Source of the DNA: Ophelia neglecta
Lineage: Eukaryota
Reading direction: 5' to 3'
DNA length: 64,000 bases
Assembly (NCBI GenBank): GCA_965285935.1
Contig: OZ260663.1
Location: 50,840,001-50,904,000, forward strand
The notes below the pieces were generated by a model that saw nothing but the letters and a program-made list of their open reading frames with translations, was not told where the DNA came from and did no database searches. Made by a program: the position numbers and the translations under genes. Below are positions 15,162 through 54,514 of the stretch, in pieces; positions within the stretch are counted from its first letter, which is position 1, and each line of letters opens with the position of its first letter.

Positions 15162-15331
15162 CAGTGGCGGATAGTTGAAGAATTGTTACCCCCCCCCCCC
15201 CCATCTCCGGGCATCTATTATCAAACTGTAGGAACCAGCGAGAGGGGTGGGGGAGGGGGGGGGGGCAAAAGAGGACCAAAACTGGGCACACCACAGAGGG
15301 CCAAGACCCCCGCCCCCAGGTAGCGCCACTG
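15162..15331. mobile_element. Short element with cagtggcg...cgccactg termini and internal poly-C/G (MITE-like)
   Basis: 8-bp terminal inverted repeats; no target-site duplication visible. Confidence 0.4.
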
Positions 15332-15466
15332 CAGTCGTGTTATGTCAGATCCGAGCTCTGATTTAATAAATCCAAGCATTGCGCCAGTAGCCTACATGAT
15401 TCCCTGATGCAAGGAAATAATAATTATCACAAAGTATGTAATTAAATTTAAAAAAGGGGTACTTAC

Positions 15467-16529
15467 ACAAGGGTATTTCATACATGTTGACGGGTCCGCC
15501 ACGATATATGGAGAAAATTTATTTAAAATCTTCAGCTGACGACACACACTGCATACTCCCCACATGTTTTAAGGTGTTGTGAAAACAGCGGGCCTTGACC
15601 TCTGCAATTCCGATCCGACACAGCCGTCTGCACCGAAACTCGGTAAACATGGAATGTCACGGGAAAACGCATTAATGTAAATATAACACATTTTCGGTCA
15701 AGTTGTCAATGCAATGTTTAATCGAACTTACTCAGGGTCCATACTGCAAAAAAATATCACGACTGGTATTAATATCAAGATGATGAACGTTATCACTTTT
15801 TGATTAAAAACAACATTTTTATGCGAAATCATATGTTGCAGCAAAGACAACAAAGATTATCATGCAACAAGGTTATTAATATAATTAAGGCCTAGATCTA
15901 CCACCAAATGGACATCTAGGATTGAAAAACCACTTTTTGAACGAAGGAACGGTTTGCCTCCGGGGGGTTTCAATGTGATTTAATTGTATATTCAGATGTC
16001 TACCTGTTCTAGTCCAACTGTATAGACATGGTATAAAAAATATTTTTCTGCATGGTACATATTTAAGTCAATTTATTTGTGGCCGATTAGGGATATGGTA
16101 AAATCCGTATGTCCAGGTCCATCATGTAGGCCTATCCAGACGGCATGTAAAATTTATGTTTTAAACACATATTTTAGCTTACAAGTGTTAGGCTGCAAAG
16201 TTCTGCCTTACATATGTACACGTCCTATTCACGTGTGCTACGCGGGGGCGGGGGGGGGGGGAGTCTGTCTTAATATGAACTGCGATACGTGTTATTATTT
16301 GTAGATTTTTTTTTTCATTTTTGGGGTTAACGACACCTAGGCACCATGTTATTTGTAGACCATTCCCGCCAATTCCCATTTTCCGTATTTCGGCACACAC
16401 CTACCACTACTACCACAATACGTAATTTCCGGGATTTGAGGAAGTGACATTTTCTGATTTTAAGAGGGCAAGAAAGATTGTCATTATTATTTACAAACTC
16501 TCGTTTAATTCACTTGTCACCACTTAGAT
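15467..16529. promoter_or_regulatory. ADCK5 5' UTR exon and divergent (bidirectional) promoter region between ADCK5 and TSG101
   Basis: Minus-strand donor gtaagt at 15466-15461; CpG-richer patches near 15490-15660 and 16230-16450; ETS-like GGAAGTG at ~16440; head-to-head gene orientation. Confidence 0.5.
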
Positions 16530-17750
16530 ATGAGCCACGAAGCATATTTACGAAGCGCTCTCGCAAAGTACCAATATCCGGATATCGCAAAGAGGGGTAT
16601 ATTAAATGCGTTCCAATCATATTCAGATCTGCGCCCAAATTTGGACAAATTTACATTCAATGATGGTTCACAAAAGGAACTTTTATGCCTTAAGGGTACT
16701 GTTCCCGTGTCTTATAAAGGAAGCACTTACAACATTCCAGTTTGCATATGGTTGACAGATACATACCCCTATAACCCACCCATGGCATTTGTTGAACCCA
16801 CTAGCACAATGCAGATTAAGCCAGGGCGACATGTAGATGCCAACGGGAGAGTTTATCTTCCCTATTTACATGAATGGAAGCACCCTCAATCGGATCTTCT
16901 TGGCCTGATTCAGATTATGACCATAGTATTTGGAGAAGAACCCCCGGTTTATGCCAAGTCTGCAGCACGACCAAGCCAGCCGCCTTACCCAAACCCTGCA
17001 GGCCGCCTGCCATATCCCACACAGGGCGGAGGAATGCCGACACCAGGTTATCCTCCTCAAAATTCAGCTGGCTACCAGCCTCCAAATGCAGGCTATGCTC
17101 CAGGAAACACTGGGTATTATCCACAACAAACTGCATACTCTACACCCGGATACCCCCCTACCAGCTACCCTAGTTATGCTGCCCAGCAGACTCATGCAGC
17201 CCCTTATCCGGCAACCTCTGCATCCAACACAAACACTCTATCAGATGAGCACATCAAGGCATCGCTACTGTCAGCTGTGGAAGACAAAATGAAGAGGCGA
17301 CTGAGAGAAATATTTGCCCAGGCACAGGCAGAAATGGATGCCCTCAAAAAAACACAAGATGACCTTACCAAAGGAAAACAAACACTGGAAGAAATGTTGC
17401 AAAAACTCGAGAGGGAGCAAAATGAAGTAGAGAAGAACATGACATTGCTGAGGGAAAAAGATGAAGAAATAAAGGAAGTGTTACAGAAAATGGAGAATAA
17501 AGAAGAAGTGAATATAGATGAAGCAGTAGTCCCATCCACTCCTCTGTATAAGCAACTCTTGAATGCATTTTCCGAAGAACAAGCTACAGAAGATACCTTG
17601 TACTATCTTCAAGAAGGTTTGAGGAGAGGTGTTATAGATTTAGATGTAAGTTTGAAACAAGTTCGAGAACTTTCTAGGAGGCAATTCATGCTGCGTGCTT
17701 TAATCCACAAGTGTCGACAGAAAGCTGGACTCCCAGATTTGAGCGGATAA
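16530..17750 (+). CDS. TSG101: Tumor susceptibility gene 101 (ESCRT-I subunit, Vps23), single coding exon
   Basis: Uninterrupted 406-aa ORF: UEV domain (GTVPVSYKGSTYNIPVCIWLTDTYPYNPP, HVDANGRVYLPYLHEWKHPQSDL), Pro/Tyr-rich region, coiled coil (SLLSAVEDKMKRRL), steadiness box (VRELSRRQFMLRALIHKCRQKAGL). Confidence 0.97.
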   Translation: MSHEAYLRSALAKYQYPDIAKRGILNAFQSYSDLRPNLDKFTFNDGSQKELLCLKGTVPVSYKGSTYNIPVCIWLTDTYPYNPPMAFVEPTSTMQIKPGRHVDANGRVYLPYLHEWKHPQSDLLGLIQIMTIVFGEEPPVYAKSAARPSQPPYPNPAGRLPYPTQGGGMPTPGYPPQNSAGYQPPNAGYAPGNTGYYPQQTAYSTPGYPPTSYPSYAAQQTHAAPYPATSASNTNTLSDEHIKASLLSAVEDKMKRRLREIFAQAQAEMDALKKTQDDLTKGKQTLEEMLQKLEREQNEVEKNMTLLREKDEEIKEVLQKMENKEEVNIDEAVVPSTPLYKQLLNAFSEEQATEDTLYYLQEGLRRGVIDLDVSLKQVRELSRRQFMLRALIHKCRQKAGLPDLSG

Positions 17751-18792
17751 TAAACTTCTTAATACCACTTGACAAAAACAAACAAATCTGAATGTAACAA
17801 CAGTTGTTATCCTAGTCTGTAAACCAAGGGATTTTTTTTCATTGAATGGCATTAATATGTGTTAACATTACATATTGACCAGGCTTATTTGTTAATGATC
17901 AGATTAAGTCCTCAGTCAACTACAATATACCAATGTGCTTAAGAAATTAGATATGGGCCTCTGCTGGTACTCAAAGCTATCCATTGGATTTCTATTTATA
18001 AGCATTTCACTTGACCCTATTTTTCAACAAATTGAAATATTCAAAAAATAGCTTTTAGAACTCTTAATGAAGCCTGTACATATTAATCTTGAAATGTGGG
18101 TGCTTAAAATTTTAAAATCCGTAGATTGATATTAATGTCAAGACTAATATTGATCAAGACTGAATTTGCCAAACAAATCCCAATGTAAATATATTTATTA
18201 TCTGTTGTGAACAGATGCATGAAAAACATACATGATTGTACATAATTATTTACTCTGTGTTTTGCTTTTCGTCACAAATTGCAAGTATGCCTCCATGCAT
18301 AATTGGGAAGTTTTTTTTTCAGAGTGGAAGCATAGCCTAATCATTAAAATTAGTTAATTACAACATTTCAGATATATAAGGGACATTCATGTAAGTCAAG
18401 TACATATGTAACCTTTCCGATCCTGTTTATATTCCATGCTTAGTAATTCAATCATGTATTAGTGAGAAAGAAAAGTTTTAACACACTTGTTTTGTAAAGT
18501 TGTTTATTCAATTTCTTGCTTCCTTTCATCATTAGCACATAATTTCTGAGATTTCTTTCGCTGCTTGTTAAATGATACCATCCATGATTCCATACATAGA
18601 ATAGTAGAAAAATACCCTCTGACTATATTTTTCCCTTACTTATTGCAGTCATTATTATCACAAAAGTAATATATCAAATATTAACATGTATGTAAATAGC
18701 TGTAAAATGTGATGGATGTTCCTAATAAATATATGTTGTTTAATCAACCTGATCACGTTTTATAAACTGCCTTTTAGCAATGATGTAAATGT

Positions 18793-45700: not shown

Positions 45701-46764
45701 GATTTCCACATTGAGTGCGGCCATCTGATATTGCTATACTATATTATTAATTATTTATGATTGTGCATGGAGTTCCAGAGAACAAAAAGTGGATAACCAA
45801 TGTCGATGGGAAAACTATACTTTGTCGTTAGTTAGTAAATACCAGACTTTGTATTTGAATTCAGCGGCTAGACACACGCAGAGTAGTTTCTAAAGGTAAA
45901 AGCACTATTGTGTGAAGTTGTTCATGTGAGACCGATGCGGATGACAATTGCTCTCTCCGAAGAGAAAGTTAGTAATAGGTTCTATTGTCAGTAACGGATA
46001 ACAATATCCTCTCTGGGTGAGTGTTCAAGTGTTCAAGAGCGCATCAAAGTTTTTTACCAACTTATCTTTAACGTCACGCTTTGAATAGTATTTCGTTAAA
46101 GTCAATATATTCAATTTATATATATAATTATGGAGTTCAAACTATCATTCGTTTATTAACCCATATTAATACTTTTCTTTAATAAACTGCTCACGTGGAA
46201 ACGTTTGTTCCACTTCATTCGAGAATTAAAAAAGCCGAACACTGAGTGAAGGTGTTATTTTTGACCGAATGTTTGCTATTTGAATTAGCCTCATGGATAT
46301 CTAAACGATGATTTTCATCATGTCATTTATTTTTCTAATTTTTCTAGGATAGCCTATTGTAAAAGTTATTATTGTTTCATACGTAAATGTATTGACATAA
46401 GCTGAAATTAATTTATCTGCCTATATCCCGTATTTTAAAATAAAATAAGCTTATGTTTAAAATAGATCATGTATTAAGGCCAATATATAAAATGAGCTTG
46501 CATGTGCATGGGGGCTATCAGAAACTATTTAGTGCCATTTGCAGTGTTGGAACTGCATTTTTTTTCTGCTATGAACTTCCCTCATTTTGTTCAACACATA
46601 TTGTCCAGTTTCAACTTTTGCACATGGATTCATTTCTTTAAACTTTTAACTGCGTTAAACTTTTAATTCAAACGTCCATGTATATATGTATTAGGCCTAT
46701 ATAAAAGGTGCATATAAACGCAATAAGTGACTCTGTGAATTTTGCAGAGAAAACAACCAAGGTG

Positions 46765-49700
46765 ATGCCCGCGCTCGTTGAGTACACTCCATATTGGACC
46801 CTGAGCTTGACAATCCTTTTCTCGATTCAGGTAAAAATGTTTAATTGTAGTTTGATAGTTTTGTATTTTATCTTTATAGCTTTGCCGATTTAAGTATGGG
46901 TTTGTCTGAGGAAAGGCCTATTGGTACCAGTTTAAATGGTCTTAACTGTTTGCTACACCGACACTGAAGCCGGACATGTGGGACTAAAATAGGTTGAAAC
47001 ACAGCCTGTTAATGTCCTCGCGTAGACACCATTATGGTCCTCCAAAGAAAATACAGTGACGATAGACCAACAGAGATTCTTATCGTTAAAAATATTGATA
47101 GCATCTGAGTAATGTTACAAATGATATTATTTGGGCACTAAATTTCAGATAAAATCCGCTGCACGAATGTCGCGCGTTCGCATCGGCCATTCTTTTGTCA
47201 GGGCGACTCAAAGAAAGGCAAAATAATTTCATTAAAATCGGGACGATTGGTAAAACTAAAGTTGCCGGGTGTCATCTCCCTTTTTTCAAACTTAATTTGA
47301 ATAGCCTACTCAAAATAACGCATGTCACTTTATAAGACAATTCATTCGAATCTGACTACTAGTAATGTAGAATTTAACAAAAAATTCCCAGTTCACGGTT
47401 GGTTTAGTCTTTAACTGCGAATGACAGCAATTATCTAGTAGGATGTAATGTCCACTTACGTTTTTTTTTATAAATGCACGATTGAAGGTGATGAATGCGT
47501 GAGGGTGAAGATCATACCATTGTCATCTCAAATGAAATCACCTTATCCACCAGAATGTTTAAGACTAAAATCACTTATCTACATGTATAAGGAAGTTAAT
47601 ATGTATAATGTGTTCATACAATAGAAACTGGCATCTTACAGGCTTATAAACAAAAAGCCCGTCACATCACATATGTATTGCTTGCAAAGTTTCATATTGT
47701 TCCTCCATCCATTCCATTAATAATAATTCATTCGTATTGTAGATTGCACTGGTACAAAATGCTACACGTATATCATGCAGAAGGGTATCTATCCCTACCG
47801 AGCTCCGTTCGTTCCCATGTTTCTATATTTATCAAATCAATGTTGATTGAATTAATGTCTTAAAGAATGTATATTAACAGCATGGTCGTCATTTGGCTTT
47901 TACACACTGCGAAAAATAAGATTATTTTAGAAGGGCAATTTGATAATAATTACAGGCACGGAAATGGTTTTCCTGTTTGAGGAAATAAACTTCCGTTTAG
48001 TAGGACAAGAAAAAGATTCTGGCAACAAATTTAAAAAAAAAAAATATTTATCAATTTAATTCAATTCAAAATAAAATTATTGGTCCCATGTAGATACAAT
48101 ACAACAAAATGATATGAACACTTGAGTACAACACGACAGCAATAATAAAGAGTGTATATTAATTATAATATTGTTACAAATAAAAGTACTGGAGTGTGAG
48201 TCCTAAACCTAGACACTTATAATGAATTACAAATTAACAATGAGTGCATTATGTTAAGAAGTTAAAAAAGAATAAGATAAAATGTTTAAACTACAAAATA
48301 ACAAATAAATAAGTATAAATGTAGTGTTATGACAAACGAGAAAGAAAAGGAAAGAAAAAATAAATAAAAATAAGGTAATACCTTTCAGAGGAACTTCATT
48401 TTCCAACAACATATTTTAGGCGTCTCCTAGATGTGAGAAAAGCACAGTCAGCATCAATTATTTTAGATACATGATTCCATAGGCAAACACCTTTTTTATT
48501 TTTATGAATGTGCCATAATCAGCAGTTATATAATTAGGTTCATGTAGTTGAAAAGCCTGTCTAATATAACGTGCATGAACACTAGTATTACAAGTAATGA
48601 AGTCATTGAAAATCGGCAATCTGTTATCATTGAATAAAGAGCAGGATAGAATATACTTATATCTTTATAATTGAATAAATTTTTAGTTGAGCAAACAAAG
48701 GACCACTGTGTACATAATATAAAGATGAGATCAAGATTTTCTCGGCACGCTTCTGAAGTCATACATGTGACCCAATAAGAAAATAACAAGCAATGCCGCA
48801 CACTTAAACATCAAATCTTAAGTACAGGTAAATAAAGGATTAGTATAGAATAGATGGTATACCGAGATTTAAGGTTTTTCTGGCTTCAAATAATATGCCA
48901 ATCCCCTTAGACATCTTGGCTTTTATCATGTTAATTGGCCATCTATCATTACACCAAAGAGTTTCGTATGAAACACCCTCTCAAGGCTTACACCAGCTAA
49001 TGCGATAATACTGGTTATAGCTGGATCACTTTTTCTTAATCAAAAAACATAAACTTAGTTTTTTACATTAATAGATAATTTATTTGTCCATTCTAACAGT
49101 TTTTCAAGTTCATCGTTCATAATTTTAAACTAGCTGATTGACATATTTTGCATTAAGAAAGACATTAGTGACATCCGCAAAAAAAACAGGGTAGTGAAGA
49201 GGTGAAGCATTAAAAGGGCCATTTACATAAGGAAGAACCAAAAGTGGGCCTAAGATGGAACCCTGAGGAATACCCCAATTTACTATAATTTCCCTTGACT
49301 TGGTCCAGTTAAAGACTACATATTGTTTTCTTCCACTCAAACAGCTTTGGAACCAAAGTAAAGCCTGACCCTTCGCCTCATATTCATAAATTTTATCCAA
49401 CAATAGGCCTAGTTGATGATTGACAGCATCAAATCTGATAGTATCCCTACCCGAAAAATGTCAAGAATGTGAGGGAACAAGATACCACCACCATTCCAAT
49501 GATCGCACACAAACGATAACATTGAATTTGAAAATATACCAAAAGTTAAGGGTGGGCGGGTAAGGGATCTTGTCGTGTGGGTCTCGCCTAACCTTCTACC
49601 AACTGGACGCTCAGAACAAAAACGCCTTCAGACAGGCTAACATGACACTACCATTGTAAAATACATACGCCGTATTACGAGTTGTACGTGTTACAGTGAT

Positions 49701-52700
49701 AGATGATATCAAATGATGGCGATAATACAAATATTAATTTAATCATATGAAATTATCTATAGTTAACCATAAATCAGTCGATAAGTGTTTCTATGTTGAT
49801 GGTATGTTTGCTGTGGTCCCGCAAACAAACGACTGGAGAAATTATTTATCGACACCAGCGTTTAGCCCTTGCGGTATTTGGGATTTTAGTTCACTTTCTC
49901 AGTTGCTCCTTACTCTTAGGAGTACAATTCTGCACTCAATATCCCCATAGAGGCCTGGCGATCGGGTGTGGACAAAAGGACGCGTACAAAACCTATAAAT
50001 TGTCATGGGAGTGTTGAGAAGCCAAGGTTTAACAAAAGACATAGGCCCTATTCAGCAAAGGTGGATTTTGATTAGGAATAATTCACTTTCTTAGGGTTTG
50101 AAGCCTGGCCTGTGTACTTTCTTCACGTAATTATTTGCAGCGACTTTGAACTCAGTTTCAGATAGTCGCAGGCGCTCCTGCTATTTCACGGTGCCACCCG
50201 TGTCCAGTGGGTTTCCGGAATGACAGAGACTGCGAATTGGGCTCCGTAGCCTGTTTGCCTTGTGAGGCCGGCACGTACGCTGATAGTACGGGAGTTAGAC
50301 GCCACTGCAATACTTGCTCCGAGTGCGGTGGTGGACTTTTTGAACTGCATCCCTGCAATTTGACAGCAGACGTCTTCTGCGAGCTTTGTAGCTGGATTGA
50401 GGCCAAGGATAATGTGGATTTTAAAAGGAAGTGTGTTGACTATCCTGATACGCAGTGGACTTACGTGGGGAAGCCCGAAGAGCTTCCTGTTCATTCCTTA
50501 CGACATCATAAAAAAAAGAATGAAAAGATAAGCCACAGGCCTAAGAAGCACAAATTTGATCTTGAAAATGGTGTTATGTTGGGGGACCAACCCTTCGATG
50601 TCTCACTTGAAGCGGATCTCGAAGTTGATTATATGGACAATGAGCACGAGGAAGAAATGAAAAACGACAAAAGTCACCAATCATTAACTCCTACAGGAAC
50701 AGATAATTTACCGGAGTCTCATGAAGAAGATGGACTTATACCCGGAAACTCGTTTCCTCTCAAAATTCGAATGCAAGGAGATACTGAAAGTAGTATCAAC
50801 GGGTTATATAAGCAGTCAGGAGATACAGTGTATAGCTCTGGTGATTTTTCTGGCTCCAGTGGTCAGGAAACGGGACCAGAATTCAGTGAAGATAGAGGAG
50901 TTTCAACAACATCAACATTATCTCCAAATATACAAAAAGAAATTATTGGGGATACTTCAAAAGTCATAAGCCAAGGTCAGTTTTGAATTTTGTCGCAATG
51001 TTTATAGGCCTATGTTTGTACGAAACGTTGATAAACCCCCATATGGAAAATAATACTACGTAGCTTAGTGCCAAACACAAAATCGTTATTTTCGAAACTT
51101 AAATACTTTTAAAGCTTCTTTGATATGGATTTTTACTCAATAGGAATATTTTTTCAGATGATGACAAATTATTTTCCACTGTTGTGCCGATTGGACCGGA
51201 TGCACAAGCCGTGGTATATGTATTTCCTAAAAGGCCCCAAAAAGACCGTTTGCTACTCATTGTCATCCAGATTATGTTGGTTAGGCCTTAATGGTTTTCG
51301 GCCTCGTTACATGTAGGCCTATATTTTTGCTGTTTTATCCGTAGGAAGTTCCCTCTTCCCATGCGCCAGTTTGGGCCTATGTGCTCACCGTGTTGATTGT
51401 GGCTATCATATTCACACTCATTGGATTCTTGGTGGATCGACTTCTTTTCAAAGAGAATCGTGGCATTTTATTTTGTAAAAAGGTGAGTGCCGCGTGGTAC
51501 TGTAACGTTAAGTCCGCAGTAAATATTTCAATCCATGCCCCACAGAAGATCATGGCGGATGCGCCGATAGCACCTCTAGGGATCAGATCACAATCCCATC
51601 ACATATGAGAACTACGTCTATGGTGGCTTACAACACACCGTAAATGCAGGGATCAGAGTTTCTGCGCACACAATGCGTAGGGCTCAGGGCACACTACCGG
51701 TCTCCAAGCACTTCGCCATCGAAAGGATTCATTGTGCCCAGGCACAGATCCCACCGTGGGGCTAAAAGTATACCAGCAAGGCTCAATGTGCCATGGGTCA
51801 GATCTAACCGCTAGGGCTCAAACACACACCGCTAGGCGTGATTGTTTCAGGGCTCAGATGGGTTATTGTACATGGCTCCGATCACACCGCCAGAGTTCAA
51901 ACGACCCATCAAGGCTCAATGTGTCAGGGCTGAGATCACACCGCTGGAGCTCTAAACACATCGCCAGGGCTTATGCGCCAGGGCCGGCCAGATCACTACC
52001 TCCAGGGTCTTTGTACCAGGACTCAGATCACACCGCCAGGGCTCAAAGCACACCACCAGGGCTCAATGAGTCCGGGCTCAGAGCGCACCAACAGGGCACA
52101 ATGTTTCAGGGCTCAGAGCGCACCACCAGGGCACAATGTGTCAGAGCTCAATGCGCACCTACAGGGCACAATGTGTCAGGGCTCAGAGCGCACCACCAGG
52201 GCTCAGAGTAGACACCCTTCTCGAGCGTTTTTATTGTAACAATTGAACGATAAAGGAATAGTTATAATACTTTTATAGATAGTCCTAATAGTCATTTGAA
52301 TAACTTTGAATTATGTCAACAGAGGAAGCAGAGTTTCAATCTTAGTACGGCAAGGAATGGACAGAATAATGGCCGATCTGCCGCAAAGTATGGCAATGTG
52401 AAAAATAAAAACAATATGGAGTATTTATTAGGCGATGAGTTAAATTCACAAGAGGAAAAAGATACCTCGTTAACAGGTAATATTGGTTAAGCAAGTTTTA
52501 GAATAATTTAACGAATCTAGATTTAGAAATGTGCAAGACATATTAATGCGACAAGATCCTCAACTGTTATGAATATACTTTATTGGCCTCGTCTTCCAAG
52601 AATATGCAACCAATTCGAGCCATCCTTTGGCCACTCAATGTCTTTTTCGCTCTTTCCATAACGTGTAGATTACCATTCTCCTATCGATATTGAGCCCGAG

Positions 52701-54514
52701 GCGATTGGCGTTGATGAAGGTTTGGAAAAGACGGAGTGGCTGTTTTCTGCAGGTTACATGGTAGACTGGGTGATTTTAAACACTGGAACAACGATCAAAA
52801 TCAAGCCAGCTAAGGACACAGAAGAAGGCGAGTCTTTTAAACATACAATAGAAATAAAACCGATTTGCACAATAGCACCCTATAGAATTATAATTGTTTT
52901 ATGTCGAACAAAAAGTTCCGAAATCTAGAGCAAAAAACAACCTTTGGGTTACAATTTTGTTACTTCTGTTTGCGCAGATTTGTTGTCAAACACTTTAAAA
53001 GGGGGACCACTGGGTGAATCTTCATTTAAGCTGGACCACATTCATTTTCACTGGGGTTCGACAGACGAGAAGGGCTCGGAGCACACCGTCAGTGGACGCC
53101 GCTTTCCGGCTGAGGTACCTAGTTTTGGTTGAGAAATCCTGGGGCGTTTGGGGGCGTGTTTATCCACGGAAGATTTGATAAAAGTGTATTATTTTTTTGG
53201 GGAAAAAATAAATGTTCTCTAACAAACTAGCATAAGCTAAAGTTGGTCCCAGGTACCATATTCAAACGTCAGCATTAAATATCATTCATTTTAATCGTAC
53301 TGAAGCCTATCGTTTATTTTCACTGACTTAAACAGGTCCATATTGTTTACTGGAATTCTGAGGATTACCCTAGTTTTATCGAGGCATCACAAGCAGAAGA
53401 TGGATTGTGCGTTCTGGCCACATTGATCGAGGCACGTCTATGCCGTGATATGATTCTAAAAAATCATAAATTGATCTTGCGAAAGTCCATGATTGTGTTA
53501 AACTTTTCGTTACAATCAACTTAGTCCTACTTAAATCCACCCTTTGTGTATCTTGACTGCGTTTTATCTATCGGTCGAGTGTTCTCGTATACACAATAAA
53601 ACATCAACTTATGTTTTCAGGTGAACAGCGAAGACAACGTACATTTTAAGTCAGTTATCAACAGTTTATCCTGCGTAGAATACAAAGGCGAATCTCGGGA
53701 CATCTCAGCAGAGAACCTCGATTTACTCTCATTTGTTCCAAGTGCGTCTTTCAGAGCTTCGAAAAGATAACCGTACAATCTTAAAAAAAATTGTAAAAAC
53801 TGCTTGTTTTCAATATATTTAGCAAATTTATGAAAGTACTTTGCCTTATTTGGCACATTTCTGAATCTTAAAACTTATGAAGATTCTTATTTTCGTGTAA
53901 ATTAAGGATCTTTCCAAGAGTATTGGACCTACTCCGGATCTCTGACCGAGGAACGAACCTCGTCCGTCCACGTGATTTGGGTTGTGTTTAAAAATACCAT
54001 TCCACTTTCATCAAAACAGGTGATTTTTTTGTTCGAATTATTGCTTGGTAGAATTTACTTTAATAGGGCCCTATGATAAACCTAGCTGTCTACCTGTCCT
54101 TCCTATAGTCTACATATCAACATTTTCGCTGCGACATACTGGTTCCTGCGCGCCACACTGGTTCCTGTAACAATGGCAAAAAACCACTAAACGTTGCAAC
54201 TTCCGAGTACTGGCGAATCGCATATTAACGTTACAAATGTTAGATAAACCAGACACTGCTGCTCTCGATCAGAGGCTGAGTCTTCGTTATATTATACATT
54301 ATCACCAATACATCAACTAAAGCCGCCACGGGCTTCATGTAATCTACTATTTATAAACCACTGTTTTTCCTAGTTGGCGGCGCTGAGGACAATTAAGAAC
54401 CATGAGAGAAATGAAGGTCACGAAATGGCGAGCGGAAGTGACGGATGTATTGTGGATAACTTCCGCCAGCAGTCACCTACAGCCGATAGGTTGATCAGAG
54501 CTTCCTTTCTGTAG
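46765..54514 (+). CDS. Predicted ~664-aa type I membrane protein: signal peptide + TNFR cysteine-rich domains + stalk + TM + cytoplasmic alpha-carbonic anhydrase domain
   Basis: Phase-consistent exons 46765-46830, 50162-50975, 51158-51213, 51345-51482, 52323-52476, 52669-52827, 52978-53114, 53336-53431, 53621-53741, 53907-54019, 54374-54514 total 1995 nt with no internal stop. TNFR pattern CHPCPVG..C..CLPCEAGTY..CNTCSECG...PCNLTADVFC; TM VWAYVLTVLIVAIIFTLIGFLV; CA motifs [41 protein letters not shown], IRASF. Confidence 0.75.
48055..49436 (-). mobile_element. Decayed, 5'-truncated non-LTR retrotransposon (CR1/L2-like RT fragment) in the first coding intron of the TNFR-CA gene
   Basis: ORF 49125-49403 (-) reads WFQSCLSGRKQYV..GIPQGSILGPLL..FFADVTNV (RT motifs; the catalytic DD is mutated to DV). 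The frame is disrupted downstream, and a (ttgaa)n-like tail lies at ~48055-48070. Confidence 0.8.
51640..52210. repeat. ~35-bp GC-rich minisatellite, increasingly degenerate leftwards
   Basis: Unit gggctcagagcgcaccaccagggcacaatgtgtca is nearly perfect at 52074-52208, with diverged copies back to ~51640. It lies in the intron after the TM exon. Confidence 0.9.
52669..54514 (+). CDS. Alpha-carbonic anhydrase domain exons (C-terminal part of the chimeric gene)
   Basis: Six exons encoding ..[115 protein letters not shown]. Confidence 0.93.

Follow-up and report, generated by a model that had tools for sequence, protein, structure and literature searches.

We analysed a 64-kb stretch of the Ophelia neglecta genome (contig OZ260663.1, 50840001-50904000, in a 762-Mb assembly), hereafter the window, in whose coordinates exon positions are given, and identified within it a predicted gene of 11 exons on the forward strand (46765-54514) that joins a tumour necrosis factor receptor (TNFR)-type ectodomain to a carbonic anhydrase (CA) fold. 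As a domain architecture the pairing is new, and both of the families that it draws on are well known. We consider it probable that the locus is one gene encoding a single-pass type I membrane protein, with a signal peptide, two TNFR repeats, a long acidic stalk, a transmembrane (TM) helix, a short linker that is first basic and then acidic, and a cytoplasmic CA fold, that this fold works in the manner of the catalytically silent carbonic anhydrase-related proteins (CARPs), and that it was acquired by capture of a neighbouring CA gene. The architecture is very probably real and conserved, which we hold with high confidence at the level of the family, and it is quite likely that the Ophelia locus itself yields a fused mRNA. 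By sequence comparison, the gene belongs to a conserved invertebrate family.

The gene in Ophelia neglecta and a relative in a single reading frame

When 1.84 billion representative proteins were searched exhaustively with HMMER, using as the query exon 2 of the Ophelia gene, which encodes the TNFR-type repeats, 69 matches were obtained, 65 of which were scanned against Pfam. A CA domain was present in one of the 65, P0010, an 890-residue protein encoded by a single uninterrupted open reading frame (ORF) on a 2812-nt contig (JGI 3300021313, contig Ga0210333_1316989), with flanks of 90 nt and 49 nt. P0010 consists of a signal peptide, TNFR repeats (TNFR_c6 at residues 52-90), a long stalk, a TM helix, a 65-residue linker and a C-terminal CA domain (Carb_anhydrase, residues 645-887, E 1.2e-70, profile positions 17-254) that has the same N-terminal truncation as the Ophelia copy. 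Because this contig is intronless, while the Ophelia gene and the loci in other genomes have many introns, it is most simply read as a transcript; transcript or not, it shows that a single natural ORF encodes the fused polypeptide. Besides P0010, the protein searches recovered only ORF-level TNFR fragments, and in a word-based search with the TM-linker-CA part of P0010, only P0010 itself carried both domains. Scanning JGI metagenome contigs with P0010 returned its own contig and no other. Two further candidates, P0071 and P0072, were rejected as fused relatives, being unrelated proteins with multiple CA repeats.

The 11 exons of the Ophelia model sum to 1995 nt and 664 residues, and each is open in the phase it needs, with no internal stop. 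Exon 1 (46765-46830) encodes 22 residues, from the initiator methionine through the greater part of a predicted signal peptide, and ends in a GT donor in phase 0. Its hydrophobic core runs on into exon 2, and joining the two exons restores a motif, (I/L/V)Q-x-x-(A/G)-G-AP, that is unbroken in P0010 and in P0004, another of the exon 2 matches, which supports the assignment of exon 1. Exon 2 (50162-50975) completes the signal peptide and encodes two TNFR-type cysteine-rich repeats (~50162-50440), followed by a long, acidic, low-complexity stalk, and has a donor in phase 1. The putative exon 3 (51158-51213), a short stalk exon, leads from phase 1 to phase 0; in the relatives, the segment that matches it belongs to the large exon. 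Exon 4 (51345-51482) encodes the predicted TM helix (~51378-51434) and a basic juxtamembrane segment and terminates in a consensus GT donor in phase 0. Exon 5 (52323-52476), which encodes a cytoplasmic linker of 51 residues and leads from phase 0 to phase 1, is of the same type, with the same phases, as the linker exons of the orthologous loci described below.

The remaining six exons encode the CA fold. Exon 6 (52669-52827; Pfam profile positions 18-63), directly upstream of which lies an in-frame stop codon, has a phase-1 acceptor three residues ahead of the motif SP(I/V)(D/N)I, at a position and in a phase common to the orthologous loci, and a GC donor (52828-52829). The first two zinc ligands, His94 (53043-53045) and His96 (53049-53051), are encoded by exon 7 (52978-53114; profile 68-108) together with Glu106 in the motif GSEH, and the third, His119 (53339-53341), by exon 8 (53336-53431; profile 109-139), which again has a GC donor (53432-53433). 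Exon 9 (53621-53741) falls into a gap of the profile match (~140-182) and resembles only the fused orthologues. Exon 10 (53907-54019; profile 183-216) contains the YWTY-GSLT motif with Leu198 and Thr199, and exon 11 (54374-54514; profile 220-254) adds the C-terminal strand of the CA fold, ending in RASFL and a stop codon at 54512-54514.

Pfam searches, run exon by exon on the Ophelia protein, identified TNFR_c6 in exon 2 (residues 34-73, 50261-50380; 32.1 bits against a cut-off of 29.4) and collinear segments of Carb_anhydrase in exons 6, 7, 8, 10 and 11, of which exon 7 (49.9 bits) and exon 10 (32 bits) each exceed on their own the cut-off of 27 bits. Exon 2 contains 12 cysteines, all invariant across the four sequences compared (Ophelia and three relatives), which fits two cysteine-rich repeats, and its best, weak match among solved structures is TNFRSF21. 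The N-terminus is hydrophobic by hydropathy, and the only strongly hydrophobic 19-mer of the protein (Kyte-Doolittle 2.86), with basic residues after the helix, lies in exon 4. No Pfam match to a Death domain, or to an fn3 or phosphatase domain, was obtained in any of the 11 exons; short TRAF-type motifs in the linkers were looked for by eye only and are given no weight. The CA domain is predicted to be cytoplasmic because it is C-terminal to the sole TM helix, an order that is identical in the exons of the Ophelia gene and in P0010. The CA domain of P0010 is closest to the intracellular CA V (the best solved match), CA VII, CA III, CA XIII and CA II and to CARP VIII, a grouping that likewise fits a cytoplasmic location.

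These results confirm what a first-pass annotation had read from the DNA of the window, namely, the in-frame joining of 11 exons into 1995 nt, an ectodomain of about two TNFR repeats combined with a CA domain, a single TM helix, and a CA part that lacks its usual N-terminal segment, given that the Pfam match begins at profile position 18. Its further proposal, that the CA domain lies inside the cell, in the place that the death domain occupies in other TNFRs, while the TNFR part lies outside, is supported by the single-ORF relative P0010. Three features described below, the two GC donors, a second donor for exon 3 and the competing candidates for exon 5, go beyond that annotation.

No second copy of any of the 11 exons was found in the window, and no paralogue of exon 2 elsewhere in the Ophelia genome. 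A TATA-like element on the forward strand at 46698-46706, ~60 nt 5' of the start codon, came up in a pattern listing and might form part of a core promoter. Intron 4 harbors a 35-bp minisatellite of 4.7 copies (52037-52202; Tandem Repeats Finder), degenerate copies of which, by eye, seem to occupy much of 51560-52210; one of the DNA runs carries a 15-bp length variant in the same intron, at 51936.

Orthologous loci and the case for one gene

The best exon 2 matches, P0003 and P0004, are ORF calls that cover just the large TNFR exon. P0003 occurs in two assemblies, GCA_013332975.1 (L005) and GCA_029980185.1 (L006), and P0004 in one, ENA ERZ25070786 (L007), so that the surrounding DNA could be compared for two genomes in three assemblies. 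In all three, a TM exon, a linker exon and six CA exons come after the TNFR exon in the same orientation, within ~4 kb, and the first CA exon lies ~0.8-1.3 kb beyond the point where the TNFR ORF call stops. The TM exon has no stop and closes with a GT donor in phase 0; the linker exon leads from phase 0 to phase 1; and the acceptor of the first CA exon is in phase 1, 3-4 residues before SP(I/V)(D/N)I, after 1-2 exon residues. The other CA introns match those of Ophelia in position and phase. Thus, the search for relatives with the same linkage, which had been put forward as a check on the fusion, came out in its favour, with exon order, intron positions and phases kept in both genomes.

Sequence comparison points in the same direction for most parts of the gene. 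Ophelia exon 4 resembles the TM exons of L005 and L007 and the corresponding part of P0010 (z 8.4-9.5), and the linker exons of L005 and L007 are conserved relative to each other (z 18.5), including five residues upstream of a methionine they share, while the sequence read through past the TM-exon donor is not conserved between the two. Identity between L005 and L007 is 67% in the CA exons, 52% in the signal peptide and cysteine-rich repeats, and 32% in the stalk. In two more assemblies, ERZ25072384 and ERZ26222911, Carb_anhydrase ORFs come after a TNFR ORF in the same orientation, at the level of ORF calls only; at the P0007 locus, there is no CA ORF call within 10 kb, a negative that, being again based on ORF calls only, says little. 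ORF-based gene calling has broken the fused gene apart in several invertebrate assemblies that carry no annotation. Upstream of the fused gene, GCA_013332975.1 and GCA_029980185.1 have a FEN1-like gene (XPG_I and 5'-3' exonuclease pieces; L005 4922-6081, forward strand) that is absent from the window and from L007, so that upstream synteny is not conserved.

Several observations weigh against the view that the Ophelia locus produces the fused protein as modelled. A sequencing-run search returned no RNA run on record for the species, and the three runs that cover the stretch are DNA (a share of 0.89-0.93 across introns, contigs that contain the introns, and no splice junctions). The donor of exon 3 is ambiguous, with a second in-frame donor at 51279. 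Exon 5 was singled out only by our own crude splice-site score, which ranks it first among 73 phase-compatible candidates in the repeat-filled intron 4; its sequence could not be matched to the linker exons of the relatives, and it contains an in-frame ATG at 52416 that uses the same donor and could start a CA-only product. Finally, the GC donors, which occur in two of the ten introns at positions where the orthologues have GT, are unusual and could mean that splicing is inefficient or regulated.

Much of this would be accommodated by two genes, a short-tailed TNFR that ends after exon 4 or in exon 5 and a separate, N-terminally short cytosolic CA whose translation begins at ATG 52416 and whose promoter lies in intron 4, an arrangement to which the AATAAA at 52404, the lack of conservation of exon 5 and the missing RNA record might also point. 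We nevertheless regard it as quite improbable. P0010 is one ORF; in Ophelia, L005 and L007 alike, the TM exon runs without a stop into a consensus phase-0 donor, and the phases are compatible in all three genomes; the conservation of the L005 and L007 linkers extends upstream of the shared methionine; and in 4/4 cases the CA domain comes without an N-terminal exon of its own.

The GC donors suggest another alternative, in which they impair splicing, so that the CA part is decaying or mostly skipped in Ophelia and the main product is truncated within or before it. Both GC-AG introns (donors 52828, AAG|GCGAGT, and 53432, GAG|GCACGT) differ in this respect from L005 and L007, which have GT at both positions, and contigs from the three DNA runs have GC at both donors on both haplotypes, so the change is fixed in the sample; moreover, the 199-205 loop of the Ophelia copy is the most divergent of the family. 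Against this stand the intact remainder of the donor consensus at both sites, the open state of all six CA exons with every other splice site preserved, the retention of the zinc triad, and the pattern of variation between the haplotypes. Among the haplotype differences listed, which leave 23 others aside, those that fall in the linker and CA exons comprise 6 synonymous and 3 non-synonymous changes, and none introduces a stop. Exon 9, which lies past both GC donors, accounts for 4 synonymous and 3 non-synonymous changes, a pN/pS of ~0.2 that is rough and drawn from a small sample, with pS near the intron divergence. This variation argues for purifying selection on the CA exons downstream of both GC donors, and we consider decay of the CA part very improbable. 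The haplotypes in the sample are, in general, very divergent: across 53433-53900, they differ by ~5% in intron 8 and by ~11% in intron 9, with several small indels.

Zinc site and the likely role of the cytoplasmic domain

Zinc-site residues were read from alignments by exon and, for P0010, from a HMMER alignment to CA V. The Ophelia copy has histidine at all three ligand positions, 94, 96 and 119, within the motifs H-F-H (exon 7) and V-H-I-V (exon 8). At the same three positions, P0010 has Ile, His and Gln, and both L005 and L007 have Glu, Arg and Gln. Accordingly, P0010, L005 and L007 have each lost at least one zinc histidine, the mark of a CARP, whereas the Ophelia copy is not a CARP by this measure because it keeps all three. 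The motifs GSEH (Glu106) and GSLT (Thr199) are invariant in 6/6 aligned sequences.

Three of the four family members are thus predicted to be unable to bind zinc canonically. Because these three lack two or three of the zinc histidines and the CA domain is nonetheless the best-conserved part of the protein, the function shared across the family is most likely non-catalytic, with the domain serving as a CARP-like cytoplasmic binding or scaffold module. Loss of zinc ligands combined with strong conservation is the signature that a functional pseudoenzyme would be expected to leave.

The first-pass annotation had offered two mechanisms for a CA fold beneath a TNF-type receptor, a receptor-enzyme, in which ligand-induced clustering couples to local pH and bicarbonate chemistry, and use of the fold as a scaffold. 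The second is favoured by the conservation of the domain in members that have lost their zinc ligands. The first is the less likely of the two and is weakened for the family by the same losses, with catalysis left as a possibility for the Ophelia copy, which may still be able to bind zinc and, to some extent, to hydrate CO2. In its favour, this copy retains, besides the three histidines, Glu106, Glu117, Leu198, Thr199, Val121, Val143 and Trp209; its CA exons seem to be under constraint in the population; among solved structures, the active enzyme CA V is the best match of its relative P0010; and active CAs without His64 exist, CA III and CA V among them. However, the proton-shuttle position itself is changed in Ophelia, His64 being replaced by Thr in the motif NTGTT of exon 6 (compared with NNGHS in the CA paralogue L002, located downstream of the gene); position 92 is His instead of Gln; the Thr200-Pro201-Pro202 loop has become Glu-Glu-Arg with one extra residue (TEERTSS, in exon 10); and profile positions 1-17 are missing. 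Since three of the four relatives lack two or three zinc ligands while the domain is conserved, catalysis would not be the shared function of the family in any case. We therefore judge it unlikely that Ophelia has a working CA through which ligand-driven clustering shifts CO2/HCO3-/pH chemistry under the membrane. Improbable, too, is the specific form of this idea in which the zinc-competent Ophelia domain is a ligand-controlled CA that turns a TNF-like signal into a bicarbonate or pH signal beneath the membrane; if true, it would represent a kind of receptor-enzyme unknown so far, and its zinc-less relatives would capture the same receptor in the course of becoming a pseudoenzyme scaffold.

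Origin, related systems and significance

Downstream of the Ophelia fused gene, at distances of 20 and 33 kb and in the same orientation, there is a tandem pair of conventional cytosolic-type CA genes: L002 (contig OZ260663.1 50914662-50916770; L002 2662-4770) and L003 (contig OZ260663.1 50927349-50929940; L003 5349-8296). Both have the N-terminal exon, GP(E/D)TW...RQSPI, and the zinc triad, and one of them has His64. L005 likewise has two further CA genes just downstream of its fused gene, at 15331-17324 and 17718-18325. All four fused CA domains share derived features that are absent from the paralogues: they read NTG(T/A)T at the position of His64, and their N-terminal truncation is the same. 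That the zinc triad retained in Ophelia came from these paralogues by gene conversion was considered and rejected, because the summed exon scores of the Ophelia CA exons favour the fused orthologues (213 and 212 bits) over its own paralogues (166 and 170 bits).

The probable history is that the leading gene in a tandem array of cytosolic-type CA genes lost the sequence for ~20 N-terminal residues, after which splicing joined this truncated copy to the TM exon of a TNFR-like gene upstream. In the resulting protein, the ectodomain would bind a TNF-like or other ligand, and the CA fold would act as the cytoplasmic effector, brought together by receptor clustering as a binding or scaffold module.

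Elsewhere in the window, a full-length TSG101 (UEV and Vps23 core, 406 residues) is encoded by a single uninterrupted ORF on the forward strand (16530-17750), which could be a naturally intronless gene or a retrocopy; its best named relatives are from the annelids Capitella teleta (65%) and Owenia fusiformis (63%).

Among known proteins, the fused family invites comparison with three groups of CA-fold proteins and with the TNFRs themselves. CA IX, XII and XIV, and the glycosylphosphatidylinositol (GPI)-anchored CA IV, are likewise membrane proteins with an alpha-CA fold, single-pass in the case of the former. In CA IX, XII and XIV, the CA domain is N-terminal and extracellular, whereas in Ophelia it is C-terminal to the TM helix, predicted to be cytoplasmic and by sequence grouped with the intracellular isoforms, and the ectodomain is of the TNFR type. 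The receptor phosphatases PTPRG and PTPRZ1 are type I receptors and, like the fused family, in most members of which the domain is acatalytic, represent signalling proteins into which a CA-like domain was shuffled; in PTPRG and PTPRZ1, however, the CA-like part is an extracellular ligand binder and a phosphatase is the cytoplasmic effector, so that the positions are reversed. CA8 (CARP VIII; PDB 2w2j), which is among the best solved matches of P0010 (E 8.5e-51), offers a precedent for a CA fold that resides in the cytosol, lacks zinc and serves for binding, and P0010, L005 and L007 have lost zinc histidines as it has; CA8 differs in being soluble, and the Ophelia copy in keeping its three histidines.

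With members of the TNFR superfamily such as TNFRSF21, the fused proteins share an ectodomain with cysteine-rich TNFR_c6 repeats and, as predicted, the type I orientation. Signalling by TNF-type receptors relies on death domains or on short adaptor motifs, and members without a death domain, such as Wengen and Grindelwald of Drosophila, exist; a cytoplasmic part that consists of a whole enzyme-fold domain, as predicted for Ophelia, is described for no TNFR that we found in the literature. Full-text literature searches gave no description of a TNFR_c6 and Carb_anhydrase pairing, the single paper that names both having them in different proteins, and P0010 alone contained both domains among the protein matches scanned; the suggestion that the architecture had not been described thus held up. 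To our knowledge, all known membrane-bound CAs and CA-like receptor domains face outward.

A conserved receptor with a whole CA fold on the cytoplasmic side of the membrane would be a new use of both modules. Its members form a natural series, with one intact zinc site and three that have been lost, which would suit it to the study of how an enzyme fold becomes a signalling pseudoenzyme and of the partners that CA folds bind.

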